A stretch of DNA of 63,864 nucleotides, the filler included, from Lenisia limosa (lineage: Eukaryota; Protista; Breviatea), in NCBI GenBank assembly GCA_001655205.1. It is 11 parts of 11 records of this genome, joined end to end, with 100 filler letters (N's around TTAATTAATTAA, not from the genome) between each part and the next. Parts side by side here need not be neighbours in the genome. Positions count along the whole stretch, not along the records: positions 12,225 to 37,465 come from LPNZ01010842.1; 10 more parts are not named here. One strand, written 5' to 3'. Shown here one piece after another: positions 12,416 to 37,465 of the stretch; position 1 is the first letter of the stretch; every line of letters starts with the position of its first letter. The notes under the pieces are model-generated. The model did not search any database. It was not told the DNA's origin and saw only the letters and a list, made by a program, of their open reading frames with translations. A program made the translations under genes and the position numbers.

Positions 12416-14619
12416 ATGATCACAGTTGGTTTGACAGGTGGGGGTGGGGGGGGGGGGNNNNNNNNNNNNNNNNNNNNNNNNNNNNNNNNNNNNNNNNNNN
12501 NNNNNNNNNNNNNNNNNNNNNNNNNNNNNNNNNNNNNNNNNNNNNNNNNNNNNNNNNNNNNNNNNNNNNNNNNNNNCTGGCTTTGTGGAGTTAATGAGAC
12601 AACTTGTCATTCCCCCAGCCCCCTCATATGCCTGTCATTCTCTCTCCCCCTCTTTTTCTCTTCTACTGCTAAAAACTGACCTTTCCTTTTGTCTCATTTT
12701 TCCCAAACCCTCGAATGCATTTTTAACATTGAGGTTGAATGTATAGCACTCCTCTCCATTTAACTTTCTCTTAAGTTCTGGATGACCCTTTACTAGGGCT
12801 CCGTGCAATTAATTTTTTGAGGAAATCAATTGACAAAGTTTGAAATGAAAGTGTCTGGAATAGGGTTCTCGTTACACTACATCCCACTTCAAATTTTGAA
12901 ATTAATTTGTTGATTAATTGCACGGAGCCCTACTCTTTACCATGATCTCTAGGCGGAATAGGGAGTGGCAAAACCGCGGTAGGAAGAAGACTGGCCAAGG
13001 TCCCGGGCTTTGAGGTGAGTCACTATCAAACTATTTCTTGTATTGTTGTTCAATCTGTGTTTTTAGATATCCGGGACACATTGGTTTGACAACTCTATTC
13101 TTTATGAGTATCAGGTGGTGATGATGGACCTAATAGCCAAAGATCTGATGGACTCATCTGAAGACCTGAGGTGATGTGGTTTTTCCAGGGTTTACGTGGT
13201 TGATTGGTATTTGTCTTACCGTATATCTAAACAGGACGCATACATGTCATATTATATGTAGTGTTAGGTGAGGCTTTTAATCCATCTAAGATATCTGAGT
13301 ATCCCCCCTGTAGGAGAAGGAGGGGTAGTTCTCTTTGTTATTTTCAGATCCAAGCCACACAAATATCAGGCAGCGTATCACATTCTAGACAAAAGCTAGC
13401 AGCTGAGTTTGGAGACAGCGTTATAAGCAACAACGCAGTCAACAGACCCGAACTGGCTCGGATTATCTTTTCCAGCCCGTCCGCCACAGACCAAGTCAAT
13501 GCCATTGTCCACCCGCTGGTCTTCAAGGAGGTCCGAAGACTACAGGAGGAGTGGGGGAGGGGGGAGAGGTAAATGCTGTTTTTTTTTGAATGGGGAAACA
13601 AAAGAGCGAAATATACTGAGATATTACATAATGTCAAAACAGTTATGAACCAGTGAGGGTGAAAGCTTGAATTACACTTATGAGTAGGGCTTCACTTCAG
13701 TTCGAAAAAGTCTGCTAAAATATCGATAGTTTTCGAGATTTATCGAGAAATTCAGACATTTTGAACCGAAGTGAAGCCCTACTTATGAGTGTTGTTTTTT
13801 ATAGTGATGGTCCAAACTCTAAATGATACATACCCCGATAGACCACATGAAAAAAGCCCTCTTAGAATGCTGTTCTACGTCTCATGCCATATGTAACATT
13901 TTAGAGCCAGGAAGAAGGGAACAAAAGTGTTCATATCAGAGACTGCTCTCCTCTACTCAACTGATGCGCATACGGTGCAGGAGGGAATCTGATATGAGTT
14001 TGTTCACCTTGTCCGAATACAAAATACAACATATCCACTGATACAATAACAATTATGGCTTCGGTCTGAAAAAAAGACTGAATCTCATCCTCGAAAACTA
14101 TGGATTCTGTCTTTTAACGCATCAAAGTCATGACGGATTAGCGTGGAGCAACATCATCGTCCAGTTCACTTCTCTTTCCTCTGACTATTCAGCGAAATGA
14201 TTACAATGTTCTCATTGAGTGTCCGGAGTCAGTTCGACTATCTCGAGCAATGCAAAGGGACTCTTGTGACAAAGAAAAGGTCCGTAATAGTTTTTTTGTT
14301 TGTTTTTCTCAAAGTTGCTGGGTTCTTTATTGTTTTCTGTAGTTGAAAATACAAAGGCAATAAGTCCTCTTACAGTTATCTTTTTGAGCACCCCCCCCTT
14401 TTTTTTTCACTCCGATTGATGCATTAGGTTAAGTCACGCATGGCCCTCCAAAGTAATTGGGACGAAGTGAAGGAGAAAGTTGACAAGGCTGTTTTCAATG
14501 ATGGTTTGAGGCTTGCTATGCTAGAATTATGTCTTTTGGTTACTTCTAAAGGCTTCGTAGGGAGAACGTCGGAGGATTCAGCGGAGGAGATCAGGAAATG
14601 GCTTGCTTCAAAGCTCTAG
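12416..14619 (+). CDS. coaE: Dephospho-CoA kinase (CoaE/DCAKD family)
   Basis: MITVGLT|GGIGSGKTAVGRRLA (Walker A), VNRPELARIIFS..QVNAIVHPLV, LIECPESVRLSRAMQRD, VKSRMALQ; stop TAG at 14617-14619. Confidence 0.92.
12794..12932. mobile_element. hAT-type MITE family B
   Basis: TIR TAGGGCTCCGTGCAATTAAT / ATTAATTGCACGGAGCCCTA; 8-bp TSD CCCTTTAC/CTCTTTAC. Confidence 0.88.
13685..13781. mobile_element. hAT-type MITE family A with perfect TSD
   Basis: Perfect 8-bp TSD CTTATGAG at 13677-13684 and 13782-13789. Confidence 0.92.
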
Positions 14620-14767
14620 GCTGCTCACTTCTTCATTGACAAGATGGTGTCTATGGCAAGACGGGTTTACAATGACCATTAAAATGTATTGCCAAAGTTA
14701 CAAACAATGACACGGAAATGAAATATGAAGAAAAATAACCCCAGCGAGTCACACACTCTCTACAGAA

Positions 14768-17700
14768 CTACAGCGGATGGTCCAGCGTATCATACGACGC
14801 ATGTTCATCAAAAAGATGGTTGTTAACTAATGGGATTAGAAATAAAACAAGGTTGTATCTGTCGTCGTCTACACCACCACGCTTATAAGAGAGTATTAAA
14901 GAAGAGTTAACTCACCCTCATCCGATTCGAAATTAGCCGATAACTTCTTCCGCCTTCTCCGCCTGGGCCTGGTCTTGGACTCCTCGAAAGTCATGGGTCC
15001 CAGTGCGCGGCCACGCATTTGGCGTGCGTGCACCATTTGAGTCCACGCCTCACTACACACCTCGTTAGACCGTGAAAGATGGCCAGTTTGAAGTGGTGAA
15101 CTGATGAGAAGAGCCATATTTAAGAAAAACACAATCCTCAACGGGAAAGACAGGTCAAAACACAAGTATGACTGAATATGCAATAAAAACGTTGGCCGAC
15201 CGAGACGTTTTCGGGTCAGCCAGCGGGGTGATGTTTGAAGCAGTGGTGGAAGGTGTGAAGCCGGAGTACTGCGCACTTGACCCTGGAGTGGGCGTCTGTA
15301 AAGTGAGTTTGATGATGATTGATATGAAACTGAAACACCTGATAATTCCCAAGCCGCGATTCTTTTTCTAACCTGAAGGGTGCTAGGGCTGAAGATTTGG
15401 ACGGGGGTAACTGGTCTTGGTCTTCGCCTTTTCCTGCGAAATAAAATAATTCTCAGGTCCACTCACCCCCATAATATCTCTACTCCAAATATGAAAATGT
15501 GAATAAATATTGCCGAAGCCACCATACTTCTTTGAGAGAACGTCAACAATTGGATACTTATCCTATTTCATCCCATCACCTGCCACCCTCAAGCCACCCT
15601 CGATACACATCGATGTTTCACCATCTTGATTGAACCAAAGCAAACGATAACCCGGCTCACATGTCACTATCGGGCTCAAAGGCCGTCGGCATCATCGGCA
15701 TGATCGGCATTTGTTCGGACGAGACAGAATCCGACCGCCGAGGCCGCAGCTCCGGACTGTTCGAGATATAGGACACGGATATAGCCCTAGTACGGGTACC
15801 GGGTTTAGAGGGGCTGATGTCAGAACACACCATGGGGATGAAGGGGACTGCGGGGCTACTTTGAGGATTAACAACGGCCTTCACAGAGAGCGCTTACAAG
15901 GTGGGGGGAGGCATGTCTAAGGGATTCATATAGCGCTTGCTGAAGACGGCAATTTGGGGGTTCCTCACTAAAGTGAAGCACTTCAACCATCTAAAGTGTC
16001 AATGTCGTGAGGCGAAATGCACACCTTTTCTGAGCCATTGAGATGACGAGTTCGCCTCTATCCTGGAGCTTTTTGCCTAAAGCCATGAGAACTACTTTAC
16101 AGGTTTGTTAGCACAAAAAAGACTCCCAACATATTCCAGATAACCATCAATAGAGAGGTGTAATTGTGAGTTATGGACCCCTCAACGCATACAGTACAGA
16201 AGAGACACACAGAAGGCTCGGATGATCGGGTTGTTGTATCGCTCGTGGAGGAGAAGCATCGACATAACTACACGTGAGCGCCAGATTGTTTGAAAGCAAA
16301 TATTGTTCAAAAAGTTCACAGTAGAAGAGATGAAAAAGGAGTTGGCGTAGCCTACAGATCGAGTAACTCTCGTCACTCCATGGTGAAGATGACAGTTCAC
16401 GATCACATTGGCCCTGAATAGCCATGCAGTGGTCTGACCGCGCAAATCGAAGGAAAAGCTGGACAATCAAACGCTAATCATTCGCCGAGAAATCGAAAAG
16501 AGTCTTATTATACATCATGCTTCAGACCCCCCACCATAACTATCCTGAAGATCAGCAGCACAAGGTTGTTGACAAAGCCGCCGACAATATACACCAAAAA
16601 GATGAGGAAATCGTATAGCGAGAACAAATTAAACCTGTGGAGGTCAGAACGATCTCAAATGAACAAACTTGAGAATGCTTTCACGGTTGTCGGTAAAGAT
16701 GTACATAGCAAAGACGGGCATGAAGAGACGGACCAGGATCGATGCCAAACCTGAGAGGGAGGGTTAAGGGGGGTATGACTTCTTAACGTATGTGGGGAGG
16801 TGGGGAGGTGGGTAAAAGATAACTTAGGACTTTGATTGTTGAAGATATTCTTTGTATTATCTGGGTCATTCTCACATCACTGTCCCAGGTGGATCACCAT
16901 ACCGAAAGTTGACGTGAATAGGACAATTTGGCCAGCGTCAGGACCACTCGATGAGTTGCCGGCCGAGATGAGAATAAAAAAGACCGGAGTGGCCAAGAGG
17001 ATGATCATGAAGAATGACAGGAACGATCGAGCTACTTGGTGGCCTAATGGGTCAAATGAGGAAAAGTGATCAATGAGACTGTGAGGTAATATTTCGTCCC
17101 CCTGAACGGGTATATTCCCAATGAATGTTAAGAAAAAGGCAAACTTACCCATGGGAATATGTATCACATGTTCGGTTCAAAAAAAGGCTGAATTCCTCGA
17201 TTAATCTTCGAAAATTATCGATACTTCACCGGTATTTTTTGAACCGAAGTGAAGCCCTTATCACACAGGAATATGATATCACAACATCAGGGAATCTCAA
17301 GAACGGTGCAAACCGGTATAGTAGGGAGCCATCCACGGGGAGTACGTGTGCTTCCTTCCAAACCACCTTGAACCACTCCTGGTTTCCATAATCTGCGTGA
17401 AGTGTCAGAAATACCGGAGGGGAGAGCTGAGGCCTCTTGATCAATCCTTGAATATGCTCACCTTGAGCCTGTAGGACTTGAACATCGCTACCCAGGAGTA
17501 CAATGCAGCAACGAAAGCAATAAAGGCTGCAAGCGCCAGAGCGACATTCAAGGTGTGGAAGATGGAATCAATGCTGCTGAACACCTTGATAAGTAAGAGA
17601 AGCTAATATCACCAATCAGCTTACCTGTCCCTTCTTTGTCGGGATGTTGAGAATGAAATCGGAGTCGATGAAGGATTCTGTTCCTAAGTACGATCCAAAC

Positions 17701-20700
17701 AATGACGACACCCCTAGACGGTCACAAATGTTTCGCTTTTGGCCAAATGGGGCCAAGGCTTGGTCCAAATAAGACTCTTTCACGACCGCAGATATATCAA
17801 ATCATTCCATATTTGCAAAGCAAGGAGGCCCCATTGCCACAAACCGAAGACAAGCCAGTGAAGCGAAGGGGACTGCAAAAGTCCCATGCCATTGTCCCCA
17901 AGACTGCGGCTCGCGCTAAACTGTACCAACGAGCCTTGGAAAGTGGTGTACAGATGCTCGAATGTCGAATACGCTAAGCCAGTCAACAGGAAGCTCAGAA
18001 AAAGACCGGACGCCCTTTTTGCCTACTTTTGATTTTGGCATCGAAGGAGTAAAGTGCTGAGATGCGAGCAATGAACTCATACAGAGCGAGCTTGAGGTTG
18101 GACGAAAAGATGTTGAGCCACATGGCAATAGAGGCCAAGCCTAGCGCCAGAACCACCAGGAACTACGTATTAGAAGAAGGGGGGGGGGGTAGCAGAACGA
18201 AGCAAAGCCCGTAAAATGACCGAAAAAAGCTTTTCGGGTTCATATATAAGTTGAAGCAACTCACATAGAAAGTTAGGAGGCTCGTGAGAATGAGGCGAAT
18301 AGGGTACCGGAAAGGCTTGTCAAAAGGCTCGTGGGGGTGTGGCAAATCGGGGTACAGCCACCGCTTGAGGACTCTCGAGATGTAGTACGACAGGTCCCAC
18401 CAAAATTTTCTGAGGAAGCTGGCCGTGTGGATGGGGTGCTGAAGGGTATTAATTAATCAATGACATGGTTGGGAAATTTGTCTGCGGTACTATTTTCAAA
18501 ACTGCCTTTACAATGGGACTTTTGGCCAAAAATCTTCAGGTGACTGAACCACCTTAAGCTAACCAACTCTCCAGTTTTGTAACAAATGTCCCGCCACCAA
18601 TACGTTATTTATCATATTGTATTATTTTACCATGGAATTTTCTCAGTTATGAAAATATCCCATGTATGCGCACCTCATTGTTTGCCTCGGCCTTGAGTCG
18701 AGCCACTTCATCCTCATCCGCCGAGGTTGGCGATAGACACAGCAAACTTGCTATCACACTATACAGTTAACGCGTCACACGTTGCAAAAAAATAGAGATG
18801 AGAAATACAACAAAGTTGTTCAGGCCGAAGCTGTCCACACCATCACTCTGAAAAGAGAAATGGAATGGATAGCACAATATTAATTCACCAATTTATTTGC
18901 CTTACAACTCTGCTATTCATGGAGGTAGTTCGCTGTTTAACGCTATACTTACTTGGCTCCGCCTACTTTTTGATCGGTTGTTTGGGGACCTTGCGTTCGA
19001 TCTTTGCTGCAGGTGTCAGCAGCCTTTTGACAACGTTGTAGCTGAAACCGTGGGGGGCTTCCTTGCGCTATAGTGTCAGGAATCAATACTATTGCAATTA
19101 AGAATTCGACATTCTCCTACAATGAAAGGCTTAACGAAGCCTTTAAACGTGATGTAGAGATAGCCGAGGACAGTCATAACAAGGAAGAGTTGGGCAATAC
19201 TCGTCAGGATAAACTCAAATACGTCCCTGTCTGACAGCTTCGTCCTAAATCGTTATCATGTGTTGCAGTGAGAAGTGATAAAGAGGCTACAGGCCTTTGA
19301 TGAGGTCAAGCTAGCAAGACAACTCACTTGAGAATGTCGTTGTTGAACGTGTAGAAGAAGTAGACCGAGACAATGAGGCCGCAAAAGACCCAGGCAATAT
19401 GACGGCTTCTTCCGGTGCCGAGAAACATCGGGATGGACAGGACAAAATAGGTGTAGATTGACGTCTCGAGTGCCACTGGTGATGAGCAGAAGCAGAAAAT
19501 ATCGATCAAGATATGAACTTTCAAGCACTCACTTAGGTCACTGGCATCGAAGAGATGGGTGTTGACAACGGAAATGGGCTTGGAAACCACTTCCGAGGAG
19601 CCGCTGAAGCTGATACCTAGGCAATAGTGTCCCGTGTCTCCTGATGTGAACCTGAATATTGTTCAGAATGGTGTACAATTAAAAATTTCAGTAGACAGTA
19701 AATACTTACTATTGCATGGCTTTGCGCCTGCTTACCTCAGTTGCTGGAATTGGTAGTAACCCTCAGAATCGGTTGTCACTGAGAAGTCATAGGCGATGGT
19801 GGCCTTCGCCTCAACTCCCTAAAATATTAACATGGATNNNNNNNNNNNNNNNNNNNNNNNNNNNNNNNNNNNNNNNNNNNNNNNNNNNNNNNNNNNNNNN
19901 NNNNNNNNNNNNNNNNNNNNNNNNNNAACCTTGCAATCAGTGACCACCACATCTGGACGGAGGCCTGACACAATACTGTTCTCCAAGCTGAAGTCTTCAA
20001 ACACGTCTTTGTTGATAACCACCTGAAGTGTCACATCATCAGAGCCAAAGACAGCAAAGTCACAACATCAGAGCCAAAGAGCAAAGTCACAACATCAGAG
20101 CCAAAGACAGCAAACATGAACGATCGGCTGAATCAGATCCGACTCGTCCGCCTCATCAAACGATATTTGAGTCTACAAGGGTTAATAAGGGAGCCATTTC
20201 GAGCAGTTCTTTGTTGAGTTGAAGTCCCACGGAGTCTTCATGCGAGCGGTACTGTTGCGTGCCCTGCGGCTGTGTCATAATATCTGGGGCCATGAAGGGG
20301 TTGACGGCTCGGAAAGGCAGCGACCGGGCAATTGCCATGGACGTCGCCGTTTTGATTTGATACACCCCGCCTGACAGGTTAGAAAGGCAATTATTTTCAT
20401 ACCTATCGAGAATACACACAGTGACTGGAATAAGTCTTGCCTGATTTGCTATAGGATTTCCCCAAAGAAAATCTGTCAAAACTTATCCCGGTCAGTGTAC
20501 ATATCATATGCATATGTTGCTATATTATCTCACCCCTCTCCCAGACCATGCTGAGCTCTGACCAGAGTGGAGAGGAGAGAAATGTAGCCTTCCTCATCGA
20601 CCGGAAAGTGAAGCACTGACAACAGGCCGGGTTCAACAGCGGCTGAAGAGTGACGGAAAACAGAAACTTTGAAATGATCTGCAGCAAAAGAAAGAACCCC

Positions 20701-23700
20701 GTACATGGCACTTTTGATTTGCAGATGGAAGGGCACTTATGCAAAACCACCGAGAGGAAGAACTCCGGAAAGGCGTAAGCGCTTCCGTTGAAGGAGTTGA
20801 AGGGAATGTGGTTTTGTTCCAAACAATGCTGACAGTCCTAATGGAAATTAGGTCACCACCATCAAACTCTAAAAGAACATACAGTGACTGGAATAAGACT
20901 TGACGTCTTTTCCTTGGGAAATCACAAAAGTAAATCGGTCAAAACTTATCCCGGTCACTGTATATAATCATAAAATTCCTTCAATCCCTTTGCATTCAAC
21001 CAGTTTGCCATGGCAGAGCACCCGGCATACAGGGGAGTAGAACTCAGTGGGACTAAGCTCAAATCGAGCAACATCCCCTCCAACTGACGTTCCATCCTGA
21101 GGGGAGTAAAACGAAGGAAATTTCGATAAAGAATATTGGCGTAAAGGTACTAATCACGAACCGAAAAATCTGAAACTCTAGGAGGGGGGGGGGGGANNNN
21201 NNNNNNNNNNNNNNNNNNNNNNNNNNNNNNNNNNNNNNNNNNNNNNNNNNNNNAAAGAGGCATGGGAGACTCACTTCCAATTCGAAATGCACCAAAGCTG
21301 GTATGTTGTCTGAAGACACCACTACTCCTTTGTTTCTCTTTTCTACACTGTTATTTGTGTACCCATAATAGAGTATTACAATTGTCCAAAATACATAATC
21401 TTAATCCCCTTGCCAGATATCACCAACACTATTTGGTTGCAATGGAATGAGAAAGAACAGAATTTAGGGCTTCACTTCGGTTCGAAAAAAGACTGAATTT
21501 CTCGATAAATCCTCGAAAACTATCGATATTTTACCGGTCTTTTTCGAACCGAAGTGAAGCTTTAGTAATTATTAACTTGAGTGAAATGAACAATGCAGCA
21601 ATATATGTAATTCATAGCTTGGGCTTTCTTGTGGTCCCAGAAAGACTGGATTTCTCAATAAATCCTCGATAAATATCGATTACCGGTCTTTTCCTTTCCG
21701 CCCTACCGTCATCGACTTGGTTATTGAAGACAATCCGTTCGGCTGTTGTTTTGACTGTGAGGTGGAAGGAGCTGGTAACTTGGTCGAAGAGCTGTGAAGG
21801 TAAGGTCGCTTTCAGATTTAGATAGGATTATGTTATTGCTCCAAATGAAATTAGTGTATTTAGTTTCCATTTTACAAGTACAAATGAGACAAATCTCTAT
21901 CGTTTACATAATCTCCATTGAAAGAGATATTGATTATAGTAGTGACAAACCTCCATTCTCAAATCCGCCACAAATGCTGGTGTTGCTGCTTGGAACCTGC
22001 GGGGGTCAGACACAGAACCTCAAGTCTCTCTTTCTAGTTTCACCATCGTCTGTCACTGCCTCAATAGCGGTCAAGTCTGTCTTGAGATGTTCACCATCAC
22101 GACCGGAAGAACCAAGGGCTTACGCGAGGCTTTGGAACGTGGCCGAAGTTTGGTCGATGAACGTGGGGACGAGAGCGTTGGACATGGTCAACTGCAGAGT
22201 GTCTGGGGAGGGGGGGGGGTGAGGGCTTGACTCTATTTCGATGATTTATTGGGGGTGAAGGTATTCGGATGACATTGTTAATATATGCTCGAGGTCCTAA
22301 ACTATGTCGTTAATTCGAAATATTGTCGTAAATTCAATTATCTGTGACTGTCTCTTTTTCATGTTACGGTCAACTTCACAACAATTTAACNNNNNNNNNN
22401 NNNNNNNNNNNNNNNNNNNNNNNNNNNNNNNNNNNNNNNNNNNNNNNNNNNNNNNNNNNNNNNNNNNNNNNNNNNNNNNNNNNNNNNNNNNNNNNNNNNN
22501 NNNNNNNNNNNNNNNNNNNNNNNNNNNNNNNNNNNNNNNNNNNNNNNNNNNNNNNNNNNNNNNNNNNNNNNNNNNNNATGAATAGCTGATTTGGCGACCG
22601 TAAAAAATTAACGACATAATTTTGGACCTTGAGATATAATAGTGAGGCAAATACGCTTACCATCGCTTGAGGTGACAATTTCAAAGTGCTGCGCCAGCTT
22701 CGGGAGAATGTCGACTAAGAAGTCAGTGTTATTTTGAGGGGGAGAAAGAGGTACCCTTCAAGTTCAATGAAACTCTCTTGTTATTTCGAATTATTAGCAG
22801 CTGAATATCCGGAAATACACTACGGCGCATTGACGTGTTATTCATATGAGAAAGTATTCTCATTATTTACATCAGAAATCCATGTTGCTATATAATTATA
22901 AGGAAATCCGAAGAAATATTTGGGATTCCCTAATACTACGTGGGAGTTCTAAATCGATGCGCCTTAGTGTAACGTAAATTGTTTGATCTCCCCGGGACCC
23001 ACATTGGTCGAAGCCGGGATCCATAATAAACTTGACGATGGGTGGGACAGGGAAGGGCGATTGTCGCGCAATAACACTGTTTTTATGAGAATGAACAGAA
23101 TAATATTCCAACTATGCCACCTTAAAACGTTTCAAATTCGTTGCCCAACTTACGCTGAAGGCTTGTTGGCCAAGGCGATAGTGTAGAGAAGCTTCGGCTT
23201 GGTTATAGCACCGGGGGCAATGCAGGAGGACCGTGTCATTCCAGGCAAGCATATGATGGCCTCAAATTCCTACAAGATGAACTCCCTCTTGGAGTGAATG
23301 ATACTCGGGTAATTCCAGAACAATATGACTGTTTGAAACAACATTCATTTGTTGATGACAAAGTAGTCAGGGCAGAGGTTGAAAATGGGACGAATCCATC
23401 CCCCCCCCCCACTTGATCCGGGTCTTGAGAGACCCCAGGGCAGCTGAGCACAGAAATGCGGTGCGTTTCAGCCATACTCAGCCCTTCACTGTCCTCAAGC
23501 AGACAAGGCGACACAGTAGATGTTCGAGGGAGTACCATGAACTGAGGAGTTACGAACCATCAACATCTTCTAGTTTATTCCAAATATATTCAAAAAGTTC
23601 AAACTTTACTTTTTCAACAAATGACAGGTTGAGCTGGTGTCAAAGGCATGGAAATTTACAGAAGTGAAACAGTGGGAAAGTGGTACACGATCATGGGATA

Positions 23701-26700
23701 TAATAAGCAAGAGAATAACCAACATGGTACGGTGCAGAGGTGTTGGTGCCTGTGTCAGTTTTAACCATGACAGTGGGGCTCTCAAGTACTGCTGGCAGGC
23801 CAAGAACGTCAGGTATCTGGGTGGTGAGTATGCTACAAAAAAAGAAGCAGTCAATAACACATCAGCAGCCAGACATACAACAAGGGCAGATTGGAGGGAA
23901 AAGTCTATTTTGCCTGATGTGCAGTGGATTTGGACCATATTACTAAACCGTTACAGATCCGGTCAAAAAACTAATATATAATATATTGATCACACTAAAG
24001 AGCGTGCTAAAGAAGCGATCTTAGATCCCCACCTCCATACGCCGTCCACAACCACAGAAACAGTGATTGAGCCAGTGAACCAAATCGGAAGTTTCAAGCC
24101 CGGCCGCGAGGTCAGTTTTGAGGAGCCAACCTGAGGACATCAATTGGATTGATAATAAATGAAATAGGATCTTACAAGTGGAATCCCCTCAACCTGGTGA
24201 CTTGTTGGCGAGTCGATAATGTTGCCATCAATGTACACACTCAAACTAAAATGGTTATACTCATAAATGCAGGTTACAATTGGCGGAAATTCTCAAAGGG
24301 ATCATGGTATGAATTGATCTTTCACTGGCAATCTTCCCTTCCAACTTTTCGGTCGTGTAAACTGCCGTCATTGGGAGGCTGTATTGCACTTGGACAACCT
24401 GAAGATGTTACTAGGAAGATCCTGTGAGTATTTGAAAGAACCTTCCTCTTTACCTTGATGGTTGAATTTGACGTGGTTGTGATCCCTGAAATGGTGACTA
24501 CGAATGGAATGAGAGAGAAAAAAAACTAAGAACGAGGAAAACACTGGGTTATCAAATATCTCATAATACATTACCCTTATTTTATTTCTCATTTCTACGC
24601 AGTATTATATGATATGATATAATATACCACAACTAGCCCCACCATTCGAAGGCTCCACCAATACAGGAAGTAATACAGTCGTTCCACCAATGCCTAAATA
24701 GTAACATGAAGATTGTCAGTACGCTTATTTGCTTTCATAATCCTCATTTAATACTTTGTGAATTATTACATATCATATGTATGATTATAATGTTTCTGCA
24801 GGCTTAACACTGAACTGACCACTAAAAGAGTCGCTGTTGACAATGACCGTCTTAGTACGTGATGCCAGCTCCGCCTCGGCCAGGGCTGGGGTGTTAACAA
24901 TTAAAAGATTCGAGGATAAGCATTGGCAGAAATGGGATAGCCACAAAATGGATCATCTAAAAACTCAGAAAACTATAACGTGCCATCCTCTCTGGGCAAT
25001 TGGCAATACAAGGCAGCCTCATACGTGAAACAAGACCGGTCTGCAACTTGCTCTCCAGAACCTGGGTGAAGAGTGTCGGCTCATATGACCCAACCCAAAT
25101 GCGGAACATCATTGAGCGACCGGCTTCAAGGCCGAAGATCTTGGAACCCTTTCGGTCCGTTAGAACTGCAGGGTTAGAAATGATCACATGATGCAGGACG
25201 TACTTTGCATTTCGTTTGACAAGTGGAAGCCATAATGCGTGGACTAAACGGTGAGATAGTAAATAGTGACTCCTTATGAAGGCAGATCTGTCACATCCAT
25301 CTGTATAACCCTGCGTGAGCATTCCGCTCACATTAGTGCCATCAACACACTGCAACGTTGACACGAGATTAAAGGTGTGGAAGGCGCCAGCGGAGTACTA
25401 AAAAGTTACTTCCAGAGAGGCAAGTGACCTTGCTCTCCGATTGACTCCACATAGTAGATTAATTATCATTTGCTAAATATCTCTGACAGCACACAGCCTC
25501 CATGCTCCCCATACCGCTATTGTATTGTCAACAAGCTGGAGACAGACCGTCAGGCCTGTTAAGGAAGGCACCACCACATCTGCTGCCGTACGAGCCTAAT
25601 GCTATCAATTATCTTCAGTCTCATGAAAAAAGAGAGATTTTTAAAATAACACTTCTCCTCCATGATATCCATATTTGAGCGACACGAGACTTAACAGACC
25701 TCGATATTAACGGTGAAAGGATCCAACGTGAGTTTGGAAGGGAAAGGGGTCTTCTGAACAACCCGAATAGAAGCTTCGTCAGATGAACTGAATTGGTCAG
25801 TGCTGTTGTCAAAAAGAGACATCGAAGCATTCTTCAAAGCCATTACAGAGCTCAACATTCAAGACAGTACACACTCCTCAAATGCCCATCAACAAACCTT
25901 GGGATGATATCATAGATCTTCGAAGATAAACCGGAGGTCACACCCTGCACATCTACTCGGATTTGATATTGTCCTAAACAGTCAGTCAGGGCTACGCCCG
26001 AGCTAGGGGAATCTACAAAGTCTTCCATTGAAACGTAGGCCAACCGGTGATGCACGGGCGGAAGTTGCAGACGATGGACAATGGGAGAGTGTCGTCGTCC
26101 ATGACATGACTGCAGTCCAGGCGGCACTGAATAGTGACCTTGTCGAGCACTCAGACCGCTTTGCAAACACAATAAAATAAAAACACTGTCACTGTGCGTG
26201 ATTGTTAAGAAAGTTACAAGTTTGTTCCACCACTTTTTGAGTTCTCAGCCACACCCACAGTTTTATGGGTGTTGATTTCATAGGCAGTCACTGAAGAAGC
26301 CAGGTACTTCGAGAACGATCCTAAAACTGTTAAAAGATCCCGGGGCGTGGGCCTTACGATGCGGTACCCGGGTGGCAGAGATCGTTGAGATTTGGAACAG
26401 CAAGGGCGTCTTGAAAGACTCAGTCACCTGGGATTGTAAGACTAACACATATCATGCAAAACATCCTTCAATATCGCATCATATTGTGCCAAATAAGCAA
26501 GTGGCTCGTCAATTTCGTACGCAGTGCCACTAAGGCTTCACTTCGGTTCGATAAAAGACTGAATATCTCGATAAATCCTAGAAAACTATCAAAATTTTCC
26601 CGCGTTTTTTTCGAACCGAAGTGAAGCCCTACAGATCCCAACATACCATACAGGTGTAGCCGTTCTCGCAAGTTGGTTCCTCAACAATATTGGCCTAAAG

Positions 26701-29654
26701 TGTCAGATAATAGATCCCAAAACGCCCTCCTTCTTTCAGCCCCACAAACAGTGTAGACACTTGAAACAATGGTGAATGAGAGCTCATTTGAGACCTTCCC
26801 TCCCGCCCTGGCAACTATCGAATACTCTCCAGACACTCTGTAAATATCAGGTTTGGATTGAAAGTTCTCAAAAATAAGAACTTTAGAATGAATGGATGCT
26901 CTCATCCCCCCCCCCCCCNNNNNNNNNNNNNNNNNNNNNNNNNNNNNNNNNNNNNNNNNNNNNNNNNNNNNNNNNNNNNNNNNNNNNNNNNNNNNNNNNN
27001 NNNNNNNNNNNNNNNNNNNNNNNNNNNNNNNNNNNNNNNNNNNNNNNNNNNNNNNNNNNNNNTGCAAACTCAGACGCTGGCCGGCTGGGGGTGGGGGGGG
27101 GGGAGTGAAATTGGATAATTTATGAAACAAAAACAAAAAAAAATGCCCAAAATCAACTCTGTTGGCTAACAACACAAGGGTTGAAACCAACAAATACACG
27201 AGATGGCTCATTAAGCTATCAGCCCATGGAATATTCTATTCTAATTCTCTTCAGGATCATAAGAACCTGCAAATAGTCCCACAATTTTACTTTTGAGGTA
27301 CAATAAGAGCAGTGCTAACCAGCTTTTGTGAGAAACAGGGTGACCCCAGCCCCAGAAATCGGGTGTCCATTGTCATCTTCCACCTGTACCGTAACCAAAA
27401 AACAAAGAGAAATGAAGAAAAAAGAAAAGGGAAGAAAATAAGACCATTGCAAATACAAATGACAATGACGAAACCGATACGAACCAAAACAGAGGGCAGA
27501 ATACGATCGAATTCGGTGATAATGGTGCTGCTTTCGTGGAAGAGTTTAATCTGAAGAATTCATATGGGTGAGGTCTGGAACTGGAACGGTATGGAAATAT
27601 GTAGTGTTCCATAAGGCGGGTGGGATGTAAAATGAAAACATTGACAGAAGTTATCCCCCAACAGTGTTGACGGAACTTGTGACTCGGATTGTGGCGCGGG
27701 TTCCATCCTTCCAAACTGTGTATCTGTCTCCACAAATGGCAATGATGCTCTAAAGTGTCACAAGGAGAAGTATAAAGAAAAAGTGATAAATTTGAAATTG
27801 CAATAAAGTGAATTTAAGGCCAATATCCCAAAAATCTTAAACGATTTGATTTTGTAATCAAAAGGTAATCCATGATGTTTATTTGCCAAAACAAACCTGG
27901 TGAGAATGGGAGGACGAAGAAAACCACACGTCTTTGAAAGTGGCCACGCCATCCATGTTCGTCTGGGCCTGGCTTTCAACCAGAGAGCCTGGGATGACGT
28001 AAGGTGGAGCATAATACAACATTGAACGGAAGGAAGAGAAGCAGGAAGCAGACCGTAAGCGTCACCACTGCTGTAATCAAGAGCTCCAGAGGGCTGAGGC
28101 AGGGTAATCAGAGATACCGTCATGTTGGAAATCTCTCCTGTTTGTCCGTTTAACGGTGTGGCTTGGACCTAAACAACAATAAAAACAAAAGAGCACGACT
28201 CTTGAGATTCCTGAGCTAAAACCGTGTCGCACCTTGAAATCGGCGAATCTTTCATTGATGCGAACCGAGGACGGTAAAGGGCTGTCAAACTCCAAGTCCA
28301 CAGCCACTGACTCTGAATGTGTAACATTACAAAAGAACGGAAGTGAATGATCAGCAAAATACCACGAATATGAGACAGCAAGAAACGTGGCTCATCATTT
28401 CCAGCAAAATCACCTACCAATAGTGATCATCGACGTTGGAAGGTCCAAACTGAGTGCGGAATCCGACAGTGGTACAAGAGTCAATTTATAGATACCGGGG
28501 ATTGCCGACCGGATCGAGAAACTATCAAATGTTGCCGCCTGGTCTGTGATCAACTGGACTAGCCGCAATACAAACAGTGTGTGTTATCATCCGTCACTAC
28601 CCTCATTGTTTTTTTTTTTCATAGTGCCGCTTATTATCTTTCCGTACGTATCATATGATATGATATGTATAATCATACTACAACGTACCCCATCTTCCGT
28701 TGTGGTGGCAACGTTGCCGACAACTTCAATAGAACAAATGGACTTGAAGCGCGAGTTTGTCAAAGAATCCTCAGCAGTTCCTAGCGGTAAGCCCCTTCAA
28801 TACATGCAAAACCCCCAAACAAACACCTACCAAGATAGTCTTCAAAATGGGAGTACTTCTCCAAACAGACAAAGCCGAAGTAGGGGTCCTGCAGGGTGAG
28901 CACTGGAATCAAGGTGTCATAATGGGCTTTTGCACAACTGTGATATCAAACAACAACCTGAAACATACCTGCGCAGAAATGAGCTGAAGCTTCGCTTCCA
29001 CCTCCACACCTGGTACACCATACCCTACGGTGTTGCGGAACCAGACCTGGGGGGGGGGGGGNNNNNNNNNNNNNNNNNNNNNNNNNNNNNNNNNNNNNNN
29101 NNNNNNNNNNNNNNNNNNNNNNNNNNNNNNNNNNNTGGAAAGGGGGGACGTAGATTTCAAATATTGGTTTCCCGAAAAATAAACAGCAAAAGAGACAGCC
29201 CATCTCCCAACAGAAGGAAAGATGCCGGTACTGAACTCCGCCTCGCTTCCAACGCCAATGATCTCCGGAAACGGAACAATGACAAGAGCCTGCGAAGGTT
29301 AGTTGCCCTTGTTGAGGTATGATACACAATCCTCCAATAGAACGACGTGATAAAGGCAACATCTAGGCTTGTTCAAATACTCAAGGTCATTCTTGCAAGG
29401 CAATAAAACAAGAGAGTTCTACAATCAATCAACCAACCTGGGTAATTAGAGGATTCCCTCTCAAGTATGTTGGGTCGTAAAGAATCAGTGGCAAGAACTC
29501 TGCGAAAGTTGTGAATAAGGCACAAATCAATTTTGGAAAAAAACACTCATATTTTCATGTGCTTACTGGCAAATGTCAGCGTGAAGATAAGCATCACGAT
29601 AGAGACGGTAAGAGTTCGAGAGCGCGTCTGAATATGGGTCAAATGCAATTTCAT
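14768..29654 (-). CDS. Large receptor-like protein: signal peptide + long Ig-like/prealbumin-fold ectodomain + STRA6/RBP-receptor-like multi-pass domain (3' end approximate)
   Basis: ATG 29654 MKLHLTHIQTRSRTLTVSIVMLIFTLTFA; beta-sandwich motifs (GNVATTTEDG, AQTNMDGVATFKDV, ATFDSFSIRSAIPGIYKL, VTTDSEGYYQFQQL); STRA6-like motifs FRYPIRLILTSLL, MLLLHERYNNPIIRAFCVSLL, MAQKR|WLKCFTLVRNPQIAVFSKR. Confidence 0.8.
17171..17260. mobile_element. hAT-type MITE family A (left end trimmed)
   Basis: TTCGGTTCAAAAAAA ... TTTTTGAACCGAAGTGAAGCCCTT. Confidence 0.8.
20030..20113. repeat. Intronic minisatellite, 3 x ~28 bp (ACATCAGAGCCAAAGACAGCAAAGTCACA)
   Basis: Directly visible tandem copies. Confidence 0.85.
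20419..20497. mobile_element. Tc1/mariner-type MITE family C
   Basis: CAGTGACTGGAATAAGTCTTG ... ACTTATCCCGGTCAGTG|TA. Confidence 0.8.
20882..20960. mobile_element. Tc1/mariner-type MITE family C
   Basis: TA|CAGTGACTGGAATAAG ... CTTATCCCGGTCACTG|TA. Confidence 0.85.
21097..21179 (-). repeat. Intronic repeat family II ending at an acceptor
   Basis: Minus strand AATATTCTTTATCGAAATTTCCTTCGTTTTACTCCCCTCAG|GATGGAACG (exon DGTSVGGDVARFEL). Confidence 0.65.
21465..21564. mobile_element. hAT-type MITE family A (consensus-like)
   Basis: TAGGGCTTCACTTCGGTTCGAAAAAAGAC ... GTCTTTTTCGAACCGAAGTGAAGCTTTA. Confidence 0.9.
26531..26631. mobile_element. hAT-type MITE family A
   Basis: TAAGGCTTCACTTCGGTTCG ... 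CGAACCGAAGTGAAGCCCTA. Confidence 0.88.
27085..27200 (-). mobile_element. Acceptor-terminal intronic repeat, family I
   Basis: Minus strand TTTCAACCCTTGTGTTGTTAGCCAACAGAGTTGATTTTGGGC..CATAAATTATCCAATTTCACT-C-run-CAG, in the minus-strand STRA6-like gene. Confidence 0.8.
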
Positions 29655-30270: not shown

Positions 30271-30903
30271 ATGGCTTCTGTTAAGATCAACCTTGGTGCT
30301 GGAGAAATCTCCCTCAACGCACCTGCAACTCCTTCTGAGTTCCCAGGATCACACTGCCGCGGCTTGATCCACGACCTGGAGTACTTCCGTGAACACATTG
30401 AGAAGTTGATTGTGGAGAAGATGTCTGGAGATGACGCGAAGGCGCTGAGAGAGGACGATGCCCTTGAGTGTGAGGAAATCCTTGCTGATGACGAGGAGAC
30501 TGAGAAGAAGGAGCTCGAGATCGAGACCAGAAAGCGTGAAGAAAAGAGTTGGGGGGGGGGGGGNNNNNNNNNNNNNNNNNNNNNNNNNNNNNNNNNNNNN
30601 NNNNNNNNNNNNNNNNNNNNNNNNNNNNNNNNNNNNNNNNNNNNNNNNNNNNNNNGCAGAGGGGAAGGAACCGACTTAATATTTAATAAGTATCATATGT
30701 TGAAATGAGATATCAAACAAGGTAGTAGTATCTAGCGGAAAAATAGTATTATGAGAAAGAGGACTCAATTTGGTTCTTTTGTTATTATTTAATTTTGTTC
30801 CATTTGGCGCTGTATTCCAATACACTGGTGTTTTTAGTCTCATTGATTAGGTGCCGCAGCCGTGATTGCCATTCACAAGAGCAAGAAGAAGCGCACCATG
30901 TAA
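30271..30903 (+). CDS. Small acidic protein with probable C-terminal membrane anchor
   Basis: Exon 1 MASVKINLGAGEISLNAP..EEK with a GT-G-run donor; last exon AAAVIAIHKSKKKRTM*; middle in N gap. Confidence 0.55.
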
Positions 30904-31217: not shown

Positions 31218-34200
31218 TTAGTTCAGCAAAGAGTCTAAGATCATTTGGTAGCCTTCAAGGCCATCTTCCAAACCAGTGGCAACCATCATGCACAACATTG
31301 GCAGGTCATTCTACATATCAGTGCTGTCTCAAAACACTGACCTCACCTCAACGTCAAAATGCCTGGAAAGGTACAGGAGTAGATGAAAATCTGAGATCTG
31401 CTGATGGAATGGCTTCCCTTTCTGAGCCTTCATGTGAGCCTAAAAACGTCAAATTAATTGACCAATATGGATCATCAATTTAATGAACGGTGACAAATTG
31501 TGTGTTGATTTCCACTCCCTCATACTTTGACGAGGGGTATTGACGGAACAGTCATTCGGTTTTCGATTGCGAACGGCTTCATAAACATTCCCTTAAATGA
31601 CTGAATGGCAACCTAAATGGGTCAATATGGTCCCTCAATAAAATCTAGCGAATTCTGTAGTACCGGCTTACAGGGTTATAGCACATGGCAGCATCTAAAG
31701 TCGTCTCTTTACGGTTCTCAACAATAATCTAAATGATCAACATTCATATTCCGCCAATATAAATCCTTTTGTAATTGCTCACTTCTTTGGTAGTCTCAAG
31801 CATTTTCCTTCTGCTTGGGGGCTTAAAATATCCTTCTTCTTGGAGGTTCACTGCTTGCCGTGAAGTCTGGAAATGCATGATAAGATCATCACATGGTGGA
31901 CATCAATCATATTTCGTATTAAAAAATATAACGCAACGAAATGCCCTCTAATTAATGCATTTAGAGGTAGACGTTACCTGGAAAGCTTCAAAAGAGGAAT
32001 GGCCACGTTTATTATCTAAACAGTCAATGTAAACATAATGTAATAATTATGTGAAGAAATGTCCACAAATACGAAATCAGGGTGTTCATTGGTCCTTGTA
32101 AACACAAAGAACCCTGTTATATTCTAGCCATCCCCTTTCTCATATCCCCGTCTAAACGCATTCGAGGAAATGATTTATTTTTTTTGCATTCCCCTTATTT
32201 ATATACTATATCATCATATAATTAGGGCTTCCCCGCAGTCCCACAAAGACTGAATTTCTCAATAAATCTTCGATAAATATCGATATTTTACTGGTCTTTT
32301 TGGGACCGTAGGGAAGACCTACACTTAATCCTCTGGGACAAAGGCGGTGCTTCCAATCATACATGATAGAGTTGCGGTTACGAATTCCGGCCCGTATTTA
32401 GCCTGATGTGTAGCGGCTCGCATTACGTCAGAGGATGTCATGTTGTAACGACGAGGGGGGTGGGAAAAGAGGAATCCAACCTGGGGGGTGACGTCAATTG
32501 GAGAGAGAGAGAGAGATACGAATGGAACATTATAAAACGAAAAGAAGAAGCTCACAATCAACTCTTGGTCAAAAATATGAGAAAAACCTGATTATTTTAC
32601 AAAACAAATAAGGCCTGATATCTTGAATTAAGGTTTAGTAATGAGAGTCTCAAATCCGAATTGTCTTCTCCCCAACAAAAAGGAAGTATCAACCGGAAGC
32701 CCACAACAGAGAGTCCCATTGCTTCGCAAATGACATCAACAGCCCGGGTCTCATCAACACTTTCTTGGGGTGTCACCTGAGTTGTCAACTCAAAAACCAA
32801 ACTTATCAACTCACATCAGTTGCTGTGCCGCGTTGAGGAGGCTCGTAAATCGCCTCCACAACCACAGCCTTACGGAGGGCCCGCACTTTCTTGGCTCCTT
32901 CCTCAGCCGTCTCTGCAAATATGAAGGTGAACAAACAGAGGAACTACTAGGTCTAAAGGAATTTTTGGGTGAATAATCACAATATGGAGTAGTCAAACTA
33001 ATTTGAAATAATAGAATATGTTTTCAACTCAGGAAAAGATCGCTTACGGTCACTTTTGGCAGCCGCTTCCGTTTCTTCGTCTGTCAACTTGTCATCTTCA
33101 ACTCTGGCTATCAGAAAAACAGGATCCCAAAGGGTCATTATCAGTGCTTACCTTCCTATCAACCAACCGCATCGTTGAACTGAAAAACCGGTTTCTTGAA
33201 GATATGCCTGAATTGTAATTCAGAGGAGACGCGCTTTAAGGTCTCGAAAATTAACCAGTTCCACATTGAAATAAATTACTTGGGTGAAAAAGGGCCATCT
33301 GATTGGCAAATGGAAATAGAGTGTTAGTAAAAAGAACACCCAATCCACTTGGAAAGAGTTAGCAGCGTCATTCGCAAGGCGTAAGGACGTAACGGGTACC
33401 TCATCCTTTAAATGTAAAAGAAATTGTTAAAAAAAATTTCTTTTAAAAAAACTCCTCCACCCACTTGGTGCCTGATTTTCGGGAGCAAACTGTCAGTCCT
33501 AACAACATTAGTATAACGATTTACGGAAAAATGATAGCATAATTTGGAATAAGACGCTTGGATATCTGGGCCCATGTACCAAGACATGCATTTCACGCAA
33601 GAGCCTTGGGGGCCGTGGGTGCTGCATGGTGGAGGTCCGCTCTACAAAGGGTCAGGCCTTCGTTTCAGTAAGAATGCCAAAAAAAAATCATTTTTGATGA
33701 TAATGTCAAAATCAACCAGAAAGAGGGGTCTGATAAAATACGGCATGAAAGTCATTACTCCACAAACCAATTTCTGCCTCTCTCTCCGTTCCATTTCTTC
33801 AATATCCCCTTCAGTCATATTTTTCTTGTCAACTAAAAAGGTCAATGATGATTAGCCAAGATGTCCAAGGATTTGGACATCCCGAATAATCGATACATTG
33901 CAAAAAAAGCAGATCCCTTGTTTGCAGTAAAGTCTCAATTGAAACTAGGATCATAGAGATCCGACGGTTGACTGTACACAAAGAAAACACCCACAGAAAT
34001 TATTCCCCAAATAGTATATTCAGCCACACCATTACTCACGTGTTGACTGGATGCACTTTGAGCACTTCATAGACGCAGGGTGTACGCAGCCAGTTGAAGA
34101 CTCCTCCTTATGCGAAACATCGTAGTTGATACGTGAGGGGCCTGGAAATGGTTAAAAAACACCAATACACGGAGCAACTGACCTTCATGCATTTGCTCTC

Positions 34201-34909: not shown

Positions 34910-37465
34910 ATGCTTCAGGTTGGGTCCGTAATTGGAGCACGCCTTGGCTATCAGGCCAGCCGTGGCCTTGCCTCTCGTCTCTATGCCACTTCTCAGTGTG
35001 TTCGCACTGTTTCAGGAAATAGAGGTCTTACTATTAACGAAAAATTGATCTTTGAGCAAAGTAGGTTGATTATTCTTCGGAGTATACTGCCTTTTTTTAA
35101 CAGGAATACTACTATAACGCGTAGTACTTTGTCAGATTACATTATATGACTTATTCATTTCAGCTAATTACGTTGTTTAGGCCAGGAAGGTATCTCAGGT
35201 GTTGATCTTCCCAATGTTCCTGAGTTCCCTCCCTCAATCCCAAAGGGAACTCTCCGTGAGGGTGATGTTGGACTTCCAGGCCTCTCTGAGGCACAAGCCA
35301 TGAGGTAGGGTTCTCAGGTTCAACAGATTTATCCTCTCACAATCTTCTTAGGCACTACGTCAGACTTTCTCAGAAGAATTTCTCTATTGACACCGGAATT
35401 TATCCCCTTGGTTCTTGCACCATGGTAGGCATCAGATGTGGTATCACCATACTAATAGGATCTTAGATTTTTCCAATTTCTATTTATAATATGCTCAATC
35501 AGTGAAAGGTTAAAATAAGGTATTTTGTCCTGCATAATATCATACTTTTGGCATGGAAATGAATTCCGTTGACGCCGCCAGAAATACAACCCTCGAGCCA
35601 ACGAGAGCTTCGCACGCCTCCCCGGCTTCTCTGATGTTCACCCCCTCCAGCCGGTGTCTACTGTCCAGGTTGGGGGGGGGGGGGNNNNNNNNNNNNNNNN
35701 NNNNNNNNNNNNNNNNNNNNNNNNNNNNNNNNNNNNNNNNNNNNNNNNNNNNNCTCAATTTTTGGGGTGAATATCATCTGCATCAAGATTCTAACAAAAA
35801 AAAACGCATAAAAGGATTCAGATAGCGATATGTTGAAATAATGTTCTTCAGGGAGTTCTTGAGGTGTTCTACGAGTGCGGCCAATGGCTCAAGACACTCA
35901 CCGGAATGCCGGAGGTTTCTGTCACCCCCGCAGCCGGATCCCATGGTGAACTCATTGGTAGGCCATGTACTGTTCTGCATTTTGAGCATCAATCATTTGC
36001 CATCGCTATTTGAACAATGTGAAAATAGTGTGACATCGTAGGCTTGATGGCCATCCGCCAAGCCACTCGCGCTGAGAACCGAACCACCATCTTGGTCCCC
36101 GAAGCCGCCCACGGTACCAACCCTGCCTCCGCCATCATGTGTGGTTTCAAGACTAAGGTACGTGAAATGAGACAGCATACACGTCCAAGCAAACTAAATC
36201 TAAGAATTACACGCCTTACCCGCTTTGATGTTCATTGTCCAGGTTGTTCCCGGAAACAAAGACGGCCGTATTGATGTTGATGCTTTCCTTGATGCTATTG
36301 AGTGAGAGGGGCTTTTATAAACACACCAGCAACTGACGCTAAATAGCTTTTTTTAAAAAAAGAGCTTACTTGTAAACTTTATTGTGTTACGTGAAATAGT
36401 TAAAATTGTGATCTTTTCTTTTAACATGATAGTGACACTGTTGCTGGTACTATGATCACCAACCCCAACACCTGCGGACTTTTCGAGAAGGATATTGTCA
36501 AAATGGCTGACGCTATTCACAAGGCCGGGTATGTCATGGGTCTGCTTTTATCTGCTCAGACCGGAAGCAACAGCAAGATAACTGACCCCCCAGTGGCTAC
36601 CTCTATATGGACGGCGCCAACTTGAACGCGATGATGGGCCACGTGCGCCCTGGAGACCTTGGCGTCGACGCCATGCATATCAACCTTCACAAGACCATGT
36701 CCACTCCCCACGGTGGTGGAGGACCGGGAGCCGGACCTGTTGTCTTCTCTGAGAAATTGTCTCACGTATGGGGGCTGCATTTGGTTATTATTTACCACCG
36801 TTCTGTTTTGTTTCTGTTTTGACATTTCAGTTCGCACCCCTCCCCCGCATTGTGAAGAAGGATGACGGCACTTTTAACCTTGTCGAGGTATGCANNNNNN
36901 NNNNNNNNNNNNNNNNNNNNNNNNNNNNNNNNNNNNNNNNNNNNNNNNNNNNNNNNNNNNNNNNNNNNNNNNNNNNNNNNNNNNNNNNNNNNNNNNNNNN
37001 NNNNNNNNNNNNNNNNNNNNNNNNNNNNNNNNNNNNNNNNNNNNNNNNNNNNNNNNNNNNNNNNNNNNNNNNNNNNNNNNNNNNNNATAGAGAAAAAAGC
37101 AGCTGAGCACTGAGCCTTTCAGACTCGTACCGAATGTGAATGCCCCTCAGTCGGCCGCATCAAGGCCTTCCATGGCCAGACCGGAATGCTCATCAGGTCC
37201 CTTGCCTATATGATGGCTCTTGGCGGCGACGGTCTCACACAAACCACTGGTGGGCTTTCCAGTCAATACAACGATTATTTTTTAATTTTATTTTTTGATT
37301 TGCATGATAGCAATTGCTGGGAGTTTTAGTTTGTTTTGGTATTATCAAGATGTGCAATCCCTGCCTTGTATGGTCTTTGCTCACCATTTAGCCGATGCTG
37401 TTCTCAACGCCAACTACCTTATGTCCCGTCTGTCAAAGGTCATCCCTCCTGCCTTCGGTGCCGAG
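34910..37465 (+). CDS. gcvPB: Glycine decarboxylase P-protein subunit 2 (split GCS-P) with mitochondrial-type presequence; 3' end cut by contig break
   Basis: [98 protein letters not shown]; Arg/Ser-rich N-terminal extension with no acidic residues. Confidence 0.93.

Follow-up and report, generated by a model that had tools for sequence, protein, structure and literature searches.

A modest STRA6-family signature at the cytosolic C-terminus of a predicted multi-pass protein with a long repeat ectodomain in Lenisia limosa

A predicted gene on the minus strand of a genome sequence from the breviate Lenisia limosa, at positions 29654-14768, appears to encode a multi-pass membrane protein with a long repeat ectodomain, and its cytosolic C-terminus carries a modestly significant signature of the STRA6 family; this description is partly supported. 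The gene lies in a window of 63,864 nucleotides (nt), filler included, taken from GenBank assembly GCA_001655205.1, along which all positions are counted, and the sequenced piece that holds it (12225-37465, LPNZ01010842.1) has a G+C content of about 42%. The peptides themselves, five splices, a profile match at the C-terminus and an open frame shared by the ectodomain and the start of the membrane region were observed. The explanation that best accommodates them is one gene of about 55-60 short exons, with introns mostly of 25-150 nt, encoding a protein of some 2,000 residues. Such a protein would begin with a signal peptide, after which highly diverged beta-sandwich repeats of prealbumin/CarboxypepD_reg-like or bacterial-Ig-like type would form a long array outside the cell; it would continue with about three hydrophobic helices, a basic cytosolic loop and four to five more hydrophobic helices. 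Next would come a pair of cytosolic helices, a module homologous to the region of STRA6/STRA6L (Pfam RBP_receptor) that binds calmodulin at the C-terminus, and about 190 residues of basic, probably disordered tail would complete the protein. The membrane core would then be remotely related to the C-terminal half of STRA6, the ectodomain would capture an extracellular partner, and Ca2+/calmodulin would bind the KRWLKCFTLVRNP helix and regulate the core, which, like STRA6, might deliver a hydrophobic ligand into the membrane. The chances that this explanation holds as a whole, from signal peptide through ectodomain and membrane core to STRA6-like C-terminus, are judged to be about even. The parts of the predicted gene are as follows.

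29568-29654, minus strand: first coding exon, with the ATG at 29654, a signal-peptide-like sequence and the donor GTAAGC at 29566
19927-29567, minus strand: ectodomain, about 35-40 short predicted exons and about 1,150 codons (ab initio, approximate)
19533-19818, minus strand: membrane-proximal beta-sandwich half-domain, exons 19818-19736 and 19651-19533
19121-19475, minus strand: first hydrophobic cluster, about three helices (SIYTYFVLSIPMF.., HIAWVFCGLIVSVYFFYTF, FEFILTSIAQLFLVMTVL), exons 19475-19328 and 19244-19121
18265-18438, minus strand: end of the basic loop and start of the helix FRYPIRLILTSLLTFY, taken in the original prediction as the counterpart of the STRA6 FHLPLKLVLSATL segment
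16439-18162, minus strand: remaining four to five hydrophobic helices, predicted exons 18162-18027, 17973-17845, 17713-17625, 17584-17462, 17101-16903, 16750-16669, 16634-16514 and 16473-16439
15898-16413, minus strand: C-terminal cytosolic module, exons 16413-16193, 16076-16025 and 15990-15898, with RNA-confirmed splices
14768-15858, minus strand: Ser/Thr/Pro- and Arg-rich tail, exons 15858-15661, 15433-15373, 15295-15201, 15052-14916 and 14826-14771

The family assignment is carried by the C-terminal cytosolic module, which contains NNPIIRAFCVSLL, whose zebrafish counterpart is SHPVMKAFCGLLL, and KRWLKCFTLVRNPQIAVFSK, which resembles the BP2 calmodulin-binding helix of STRA6. Pfam was queried with pieces of up to 80 residues against 24,736 families, and the top family for the 65-residue C-terminus, as spliced in the RNA, was RBP_receptor (PF14752; E = 2.9e-4, 20.1 bits). 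The match comprises two stretches, the better of which lies at profile positions 576-604 of 605, right where the calmodulin-binding helices of the family are located and directly after the last membrane helix. Correction for the approximately 35 sequences scanned brings the E-value to about 0.01. The C-terminal STRA6 motifs cited in the original prediction proved to be real: a probe of PDB sequences with the human motifs retrieved zebrafish STRA6 (5SY1_A), with SHPVMKAFCGLLLQSS at 556-571 and a second segment at 603-627, and the calmodulin-peptide entry 5K8Q also answered. The Lenisia counterparts of these two zebrafish segments occur in the same order, 18-20 residues apart as against 31 in zebrafish. 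BP2 calmodulin-binding peptides of zebrafish and sheep STRA6 have been quoted (PMC12714816), and the Lenisia helix is identical to each of them at 7 of 27 positions, compared with 12 of 27 between zebrafish and sheep; the W, T, L, N and P of BP2 are common to all three. Two putative calmodulin-binding helices thus appear, by sequence, in the proper order after the last predicted transmembrane helix. Each peptide quoted in the original prediction was found in translation on the minus strand, at the following places.

18312-18265, minus strand: FRYPIRLILTSLLTFY
16636-16577, minus strand: RFNLFSLYDFLIFLVYIVGG
16449-16432, minus strand: RFARSD
16259-16197, minus strand: MLLLHERYNNPIIRAFCVSLL
16035-16024 and 15989-15933, minus strand: AQKR/WLKCFTLVRNPQIAVFSKR, read across a splice

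The splicing of this end of the gene is documented by RNA. Run X2 is a poly-A library from the same study as run X1, and its contigs were placed on 14700-19830; X1 covers the whole stretch at a depth of about 35 and is apparently the DNA behind the assembly, hence not independent support. The first X2 contig joins 16236-16192, 16075-16025, 15990-15898 and 15858-15840, which, with one ambiguous base shifted, corresponds to GT-AG introns at 16192-16077 (116 nt), 16024-15991 (34 nt) and 15897-15859 (39 nt). The second contig joins 15246-15201, 15052-14916 and 14826-14700 across introns 15200-15053 and 14915-14827, so that five GT-AG introns are confirmed in total, all at the 3' end of the gene. 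The 34-nt intron links AQK(R) to WLKCFTL, so the AQKR/WLKC join is a genuine splice, as had been proposed, and along the first contig the reading frame is preserved between ..RAFCVSLLY and ..MPPPT. In the second contig one frame stays open from the 5' end to a stop at 14770-14768, and the minus-strand gene ends there, after ..DTLDHPL, within spliced RNA.

Beyond the confirmed introns, the exon model was obtained by a dynamic-programming, splice-aware parse with a raised intron penalty; a low penalty over-split the sequence and missed one confirmed intron. The parse recovers all three RNA-confirmed introns of the STRA6-like region without prior input. A hand-curated model of the 3' part has 23 exons from 19818 to 14768, all bounded by GT-AG introns of 25-360 nt, and its 887 codons run uninterrupted to the one stop at the end. 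Within it, the exon choices at 17973-17625 are uncertain, as is the choice around 16514-16413, where introns of 40 and 25 nt were used; in this model, intron read-through accounts for the R of 'RFNLF' and for the SD of 'RFARSD'. As a strand control, both strands were parsed with identical self-training and generic splice seeds, and the minus strand scored 345 (57 exons, 5.5 kilobases (kb) coding) against 93 (8 exons) for the plus strand. The clearest blocks are 26918-22578 (99 versus 14) and 19837-14700 (160 versus 11).

The locus as a whole has an intron density of about one per 230 nt. Very short introns recur in it: besides the 34- and 39-nt introns confirmed by RNA, introns of 25-40 nt are predicted at 16438-16414, 16668-16635 and 17624-17585. 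Two links of the tail, from 15661 to 15433 and from 15373 to 15295, are no more than predictions. The donor predicted at 15660, GTGAGC, contains an in-frame TGA (15659-15657), and two alternative C-termini are possible, one ending in ..EPDSDM when the transcript is unspliced at 15660 and one with a tail about 120 residues longer when it is spliced. A ciliate-type genetic code was considered and rejected on the G+C content of about 42%. The confirmed exons are open under the standard code, but they have no in-frame TAA or TAG by which to discriminate between the two codes.

At the junction between ectodomain and membrane region, the final repeat's C-terminal strands and the first hydrophobic helices share one stop-free frame, 19662-19327, and a CarboxypepD_reg alignment spans the predicted 19736/19651 splice into this frame. 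An ectodomain repeat is thus fused directly to the start of the membrane region. From the shared frame to the STRA6-like end, the chain continues through predicted, phase-consistent GT-AG splices, and upstream of the junction the support comes from the parse, from recurrence of the motif and from the asymmetry between the strands. The original prediction of a single gene of dozens of exons, ectodomain and membrane part together, is thus borne out at the junction by the shared open frame and is a prediction elsewhere.

A hydropathy scan of the curated model, itself partly uncertain in its exons, indicated 7-8 hydrophobic segments, about three before and four to five after the basic loop. Their order is about three hydrophobic segments, a 118-residue basic loop, a long helix at FRYPIRLIL, a 110-residue neutral loop and three to four further hydrophobic segments. 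Net charge is -5 in the part next to the ectodomain, +8 in the loop before the FRYPIRLIL helix and +14 in the post-membrane region with the STRA6-like helices. These loop charges fit an arrangement with the N-terminus outside and the C-terminus inside, a topology that is plausible on predicted features. Judged by the human sequence, it would be collinear with the C-terminal half of STRA6.

At the upstream end of the gene, the signal-peptide exon that had been proposed from 29654 has its ATG and a basic n-region, followed by a 15-residue hydrophobic core ending in ..TLTFA. Stop-free frames between about 15 and 30 kb are short, and the minus strand has more of them. The AT skew is positive nowhere but at about 15.2-30.2 kb, as would be expected for one minus-strand transcription unit. 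Open reading frames (ORFs) on the plus strand bracket the interval, a convergent one ending at 14619 and a divergent one starting at 30271. A single gene spanning 29654-14768 is considered likely.

Evidence on the ectodomain comes from a recurring motif and from weak profile matches. The minus strand has three occurrences of the strict motif T[DN]xxGx[AVYFTS]x[FLIVW] and the plus strand none; looser copies are located at about 28553, 25165, 23770 and 22170, and every larger block contains copies of this looser kind. Similarity among the repeats is weak, the best E-value being about 0.003 in a tiny database. The repeated beta-sandwich motif of the original prediction is thus confirmed in part: it is sparse, and the repeats are little alike. 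For the membrane-proximal repeat (67 residues, spliced), Pfam gave CarboxypepD_reg (PF13620) with E = 0.0065 and 17.2 bits at profile positions 30-70 of 82, and the same repeat matched SdrD_B with E = 0.03. Matches to SdrD_B, Big_1, MG4 and Invasin_D3 are sub-threshold as a group (E = 0.03-0.15), and the region 27318-27545 yields weak Big_1, MG4 and CarboxypepD_reg matches. Two other spliced repeats and ten further ectodomain frames had no Pfam match, and a PDB sequence search with an ectodomain repeat returned none.

Arrays of CarboxypepD_reg, SdrD_B and Big_1 domains in surface proteins offer the closest comparison for these repeats: T-D-x-x-G-x-x-x-F ... G-x-Y motifs likewise recur here on short exons, but scores are far under the family cut-offs (at best 17 versus 32 bits), most repeats have no match, and no domain could be put together in full with confidence. 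Polycystin-1-type receptors combine arrays of Ig-like PKD repeats with a multi-pass C-terminal region, and a long extracellular beta-sandwich array fused to a multi-pass region resembles them in layout alone; unlike in those receptors, the Pfam scans gave no PKD, REJ, GPS or PLAT match.

Five gaps in the assembly interrupt the gene.

29062-29135, 26919-27062, 22391-22577, 21197-21253 and 19838-19926, no strand: N gaps inside the gene

Three of the five adjoin poly-C or poly-G runs of 12-13 nt. The gap nearest the membrane region, 19838-19926, is entered from upstream by the open frame ..RPDVVVTDCKV, and its downstream flank is the 3' end of an intron with the acceptor at 19820-19819. An open frame on one side and an intron end on the other imply that the gap probably hides a donor site and possibly also coding sequence of the last repeat; the N-terminal half of the membrane-proximal half-domain lies in or beyond it. 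Public data would probably suffice to close this gap, since a 3,710-nt X1 contig continues past 19830 for another 1,108 nt.

Several results weigh against the explanation proposed above, and many of them concern the relationship to STRA6. The RBP_receptor match covers about 50 residues, and its 20.1 bits fall short of the family's gathering score of 25 bits; the profile comparison that the original prediction had put forward as its refuting check, run here on pieces, came out divided between a low E-value at the C-terminus and a score under the cut-off. Per-exon Pfam scans of 30 stop-free pieces gave no RBP_receptor match, merely weak beta-sandwich hints, and three 80-residue spliced membrane pieces had no Pfam match. 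When the FRYPIRLIL.. and RFNLFSLYDF.. segments were joined to the C-terminal anchor so as to pass the HMMER filters, the scores were 19.9 and 19.2 bits, again in two stretches and with no gain, and neither segment reached a per-comparison P of about 4e-4. The order of segments said to be shared with STRA6 is consequently upheld for the C-terminal helices (E = 2.9e-4) and not for these two segments, which add no score. Per-exon phmmer searches of PDB sequences that include zebrafish STRA6 (5SY1) found no STRA6 for any piece; the best match of the C-terminal peptide was the unrelated TFIIE-beta (E = 0.022), which places the BP2-like motif, taken alone, near chance level in single-sequence comparison. 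Similarity to the TM6-TM9 core of STRA6 was not detectable at the sequence level, a result with which a very remote relationship would still be compatible. The predicted number of helices before the cytosolic loop is about three, versus five in STRA6. Relatives were also sought: HMMER with the 94-residue frame 16185-16466 found no match among 1.84 billion representative proteins, a word-indexed collection searched with the spliced C-terminus gave no candidate, two metagenome contig scans revealed no relative, and the ESM Atlas neighbours of two exons stayed below 0.8, at chance level. Outside the membrane region, the fold of the ectodomain rests solely on sub-threshold matches, with a best score of 17.2 bits against a CarboxypepD_reg gathering score of 32.3; the term 'Ig-like' used in the original prediction is apt in the broad sense of a beta-sandwich, and the CarboxypepD_reg, SdrD_B and Big_1 matches do not carry it further.

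The multi-pass region might on these grounds belong to an undescribed family unrelated to STRA6, whose short amphipathic end of calmodulin-binding type came to look alike by convergence or chance. The brief and sub-threshold profile similarity, the transmembrane segments that contribute nothing to the score, the similar-looking chance-level match of the same peptide to TFIIE-beta and the differing number of N-terminal helices would all agree with such an origin, which is nevertheless considered unlikely: RBP_receptor was reached at a corrected E-value of about 0.01 among all families scanned, and the match takes in two successive helices whose order is correct and which lie at the extreme end of the profile, immediately following the last membrane helix. 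The locus of human KIAA1529/CCDC180 presumably carries a remnant of STRA6L, so that partial matches to the non-transmembrane part of the profile may be family-specific. KIAA1529/CCDC180 is the sole other protein named as matching that part (PMC9333335 supplementary files).

Two further alternatives question the gene itself and not the family. The interval could hold two or more tandem minus-strand genes, an upstream one for a secreted or single-pass repeat protein and a downstream one for a separate membrane protein, given that there is no RNA evidence upstream of 16236 from the X2 contigs, that the five gaps lie in the interval, and that in blocks 29700-29136 and 22390-21254 the minus-strand parse has no better coding signal than the plus strand. 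Such a division is held to be improbable, because frame 19662-19327 contains the CarboxypepD_reg-like repeat end and the first hydrophobic helices together, motif-bearing exons occur in every larger block and AT skew is continuous over the interval; no start or terminal exon is known between blocks, although no dedicated search for one was made. A decaying or non-functional gene, with open frames left over as relics and several 'exons' of mobile-element origin, is a still more remote prospect, with very little probability assigned to it. Several insertions of miniature inverted-repeat transposable elements (MITEs), other high-copy repeats, the low RNA depth of 2-10 and the failure to find relatives would be in keeping with decay, but the exons at the 3' end are transcribed and their splicing is correct and preserves the frame, the 23-exon chain keeps its 887 codons open, and the MITEs lie in predicted introns.

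The repeats of the piece deserve a separate description. The MITE-like element is about 110 nt long, with the terminal inverted repeats GCTTCACTTCGGTTCGAAAAA ... TTTTTCGAACCGAAGTGAAGC, and its X1 word depth of about 14,600, compared with about 35 for unique sequence, suggests a few hundred genomic copies.

13678-13737, 17156-17263, 21461-21569, 21614-21680, 26527-26626 and 32218-32328, no strand: copies of the MITE-like element with terminal inverted repeats

Four copies (17156-17263, 21461-21569, 21614-21680 and 26527-26626) are situated in predicted introns of the gene, and MITE insertions also break up the ectodomain region. A second high-copy element, at about 18792-18912, has an X1 word depth of about 11,700, and many chimeric joints connect it with 14857-14892 and 17258. 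An open frame that overlaps this element contains the hydrophobic stretch ..NNFVVFLISIFL.. and could be taken for an exon by mistake. Another short element, whose ends are inverted (CAGTGACTGGAATAAG ... CTTATCCCGGTCACTG), is found within the ectodomain region at 20414-20503 and 20877-20966, the two copies being 80% identical and 463 nt apart. Poly-G or poly-C edges of 12-13 nt mark six of the nine gaps of the piece (12458, 21197, 26919, 29062, 30564 and 35685), and comparable homopolymer runs occur away from gaps at 18179-18189, 22210-22219 and 23400-23410; the runs at gap edges may be a sequencing or assembly artefact, such as poly-G reads, or genuine homopolymer tracts that break assembly.

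Downstream of the 3' end of the gene, plus-strand ORFs lie at 13261-13572 and 14440-14619. The latter ends about 150 nt from the minus-strand stop, so that the 3' ends converge, and the RNA contig extending to 14700 comes near it. On the far side of the piece, plus-strand open frames at about 35800-37465 resemble what we take to be glycine dehydrogenase (the glycine cleavage P protein), from a by-eye reading of translations. Rfam and tRNA scans of 12225-37465 found nothing.

The comparison with STRA6 and STRA6L (RBPR2) defines what kind of protein this would be. Vertebrate STRA6 is not known to have a large ectodomain and exposes about 50 N-terminal residues outside. Shared with these proteins are a multi-pass region followed by a cytosolic ..P..(K/R)AFC..LL helix and a W...(Y/F)TLV.NP.(L/I) helix, the latter being the major calmodulin-binding helix of STRA6 (BP2/CaMBP2), and a basic cytosolic loop ahead of a long helix. 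In contrast, the Lenisia protein would have a predicted extracellular part of more than 1,000 residues, about three helices before the loop and an additional tail of about 190 residues; its membrane helices lack detectable profile similarity, its total score is under the family cut-off, and no retinol-binding-protein-binding loop is recognisable in it. Each STRA6 protomer has nine transmembrane helices and one intramembrane helix, and the protein forms a dimer (PMC7154012). By its sequence the Lenisia protein is probably a variant of the STRA6/STRA6L kind. That it truly belongs to the family while standing apart from the vertebrate retinol system, with an adhesin-like ectodomain of more than 1,000 residues, a retained core and Ca2+/calmodulin helices and a reduced N-terminal bundle, is put forward tentatively, at somewhat less than even chances.

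STRA6 has been described as resembling no other transporter, channel or receptor in sequence (PMC7154012). Amphioxus possesses four Stra6-like genes and no Stra6, the function of these genes being unknown (PMC3184775), and a 'stra6' transcript has been reported from sponges (PMC7743902), so that the family is known outside vertebrates without a known function there. If the similarity were limited to the C-terminal helices, the Lenisia gene would encode an orphan repeat-rich surface protein of modest interest. If the proposed relationship is true, it would indicate that the ancestral fold, in a pre-retinoid role, formed the membrane end of a large device for extracellular capture. A divergent relative with calmodulin-binding helices and a huge ectodomain would provide a concrete object on which to test the role that the fold had before retinol-binding protein existed, and would also be a sign that control by calmodulin predates the transport of retinol.

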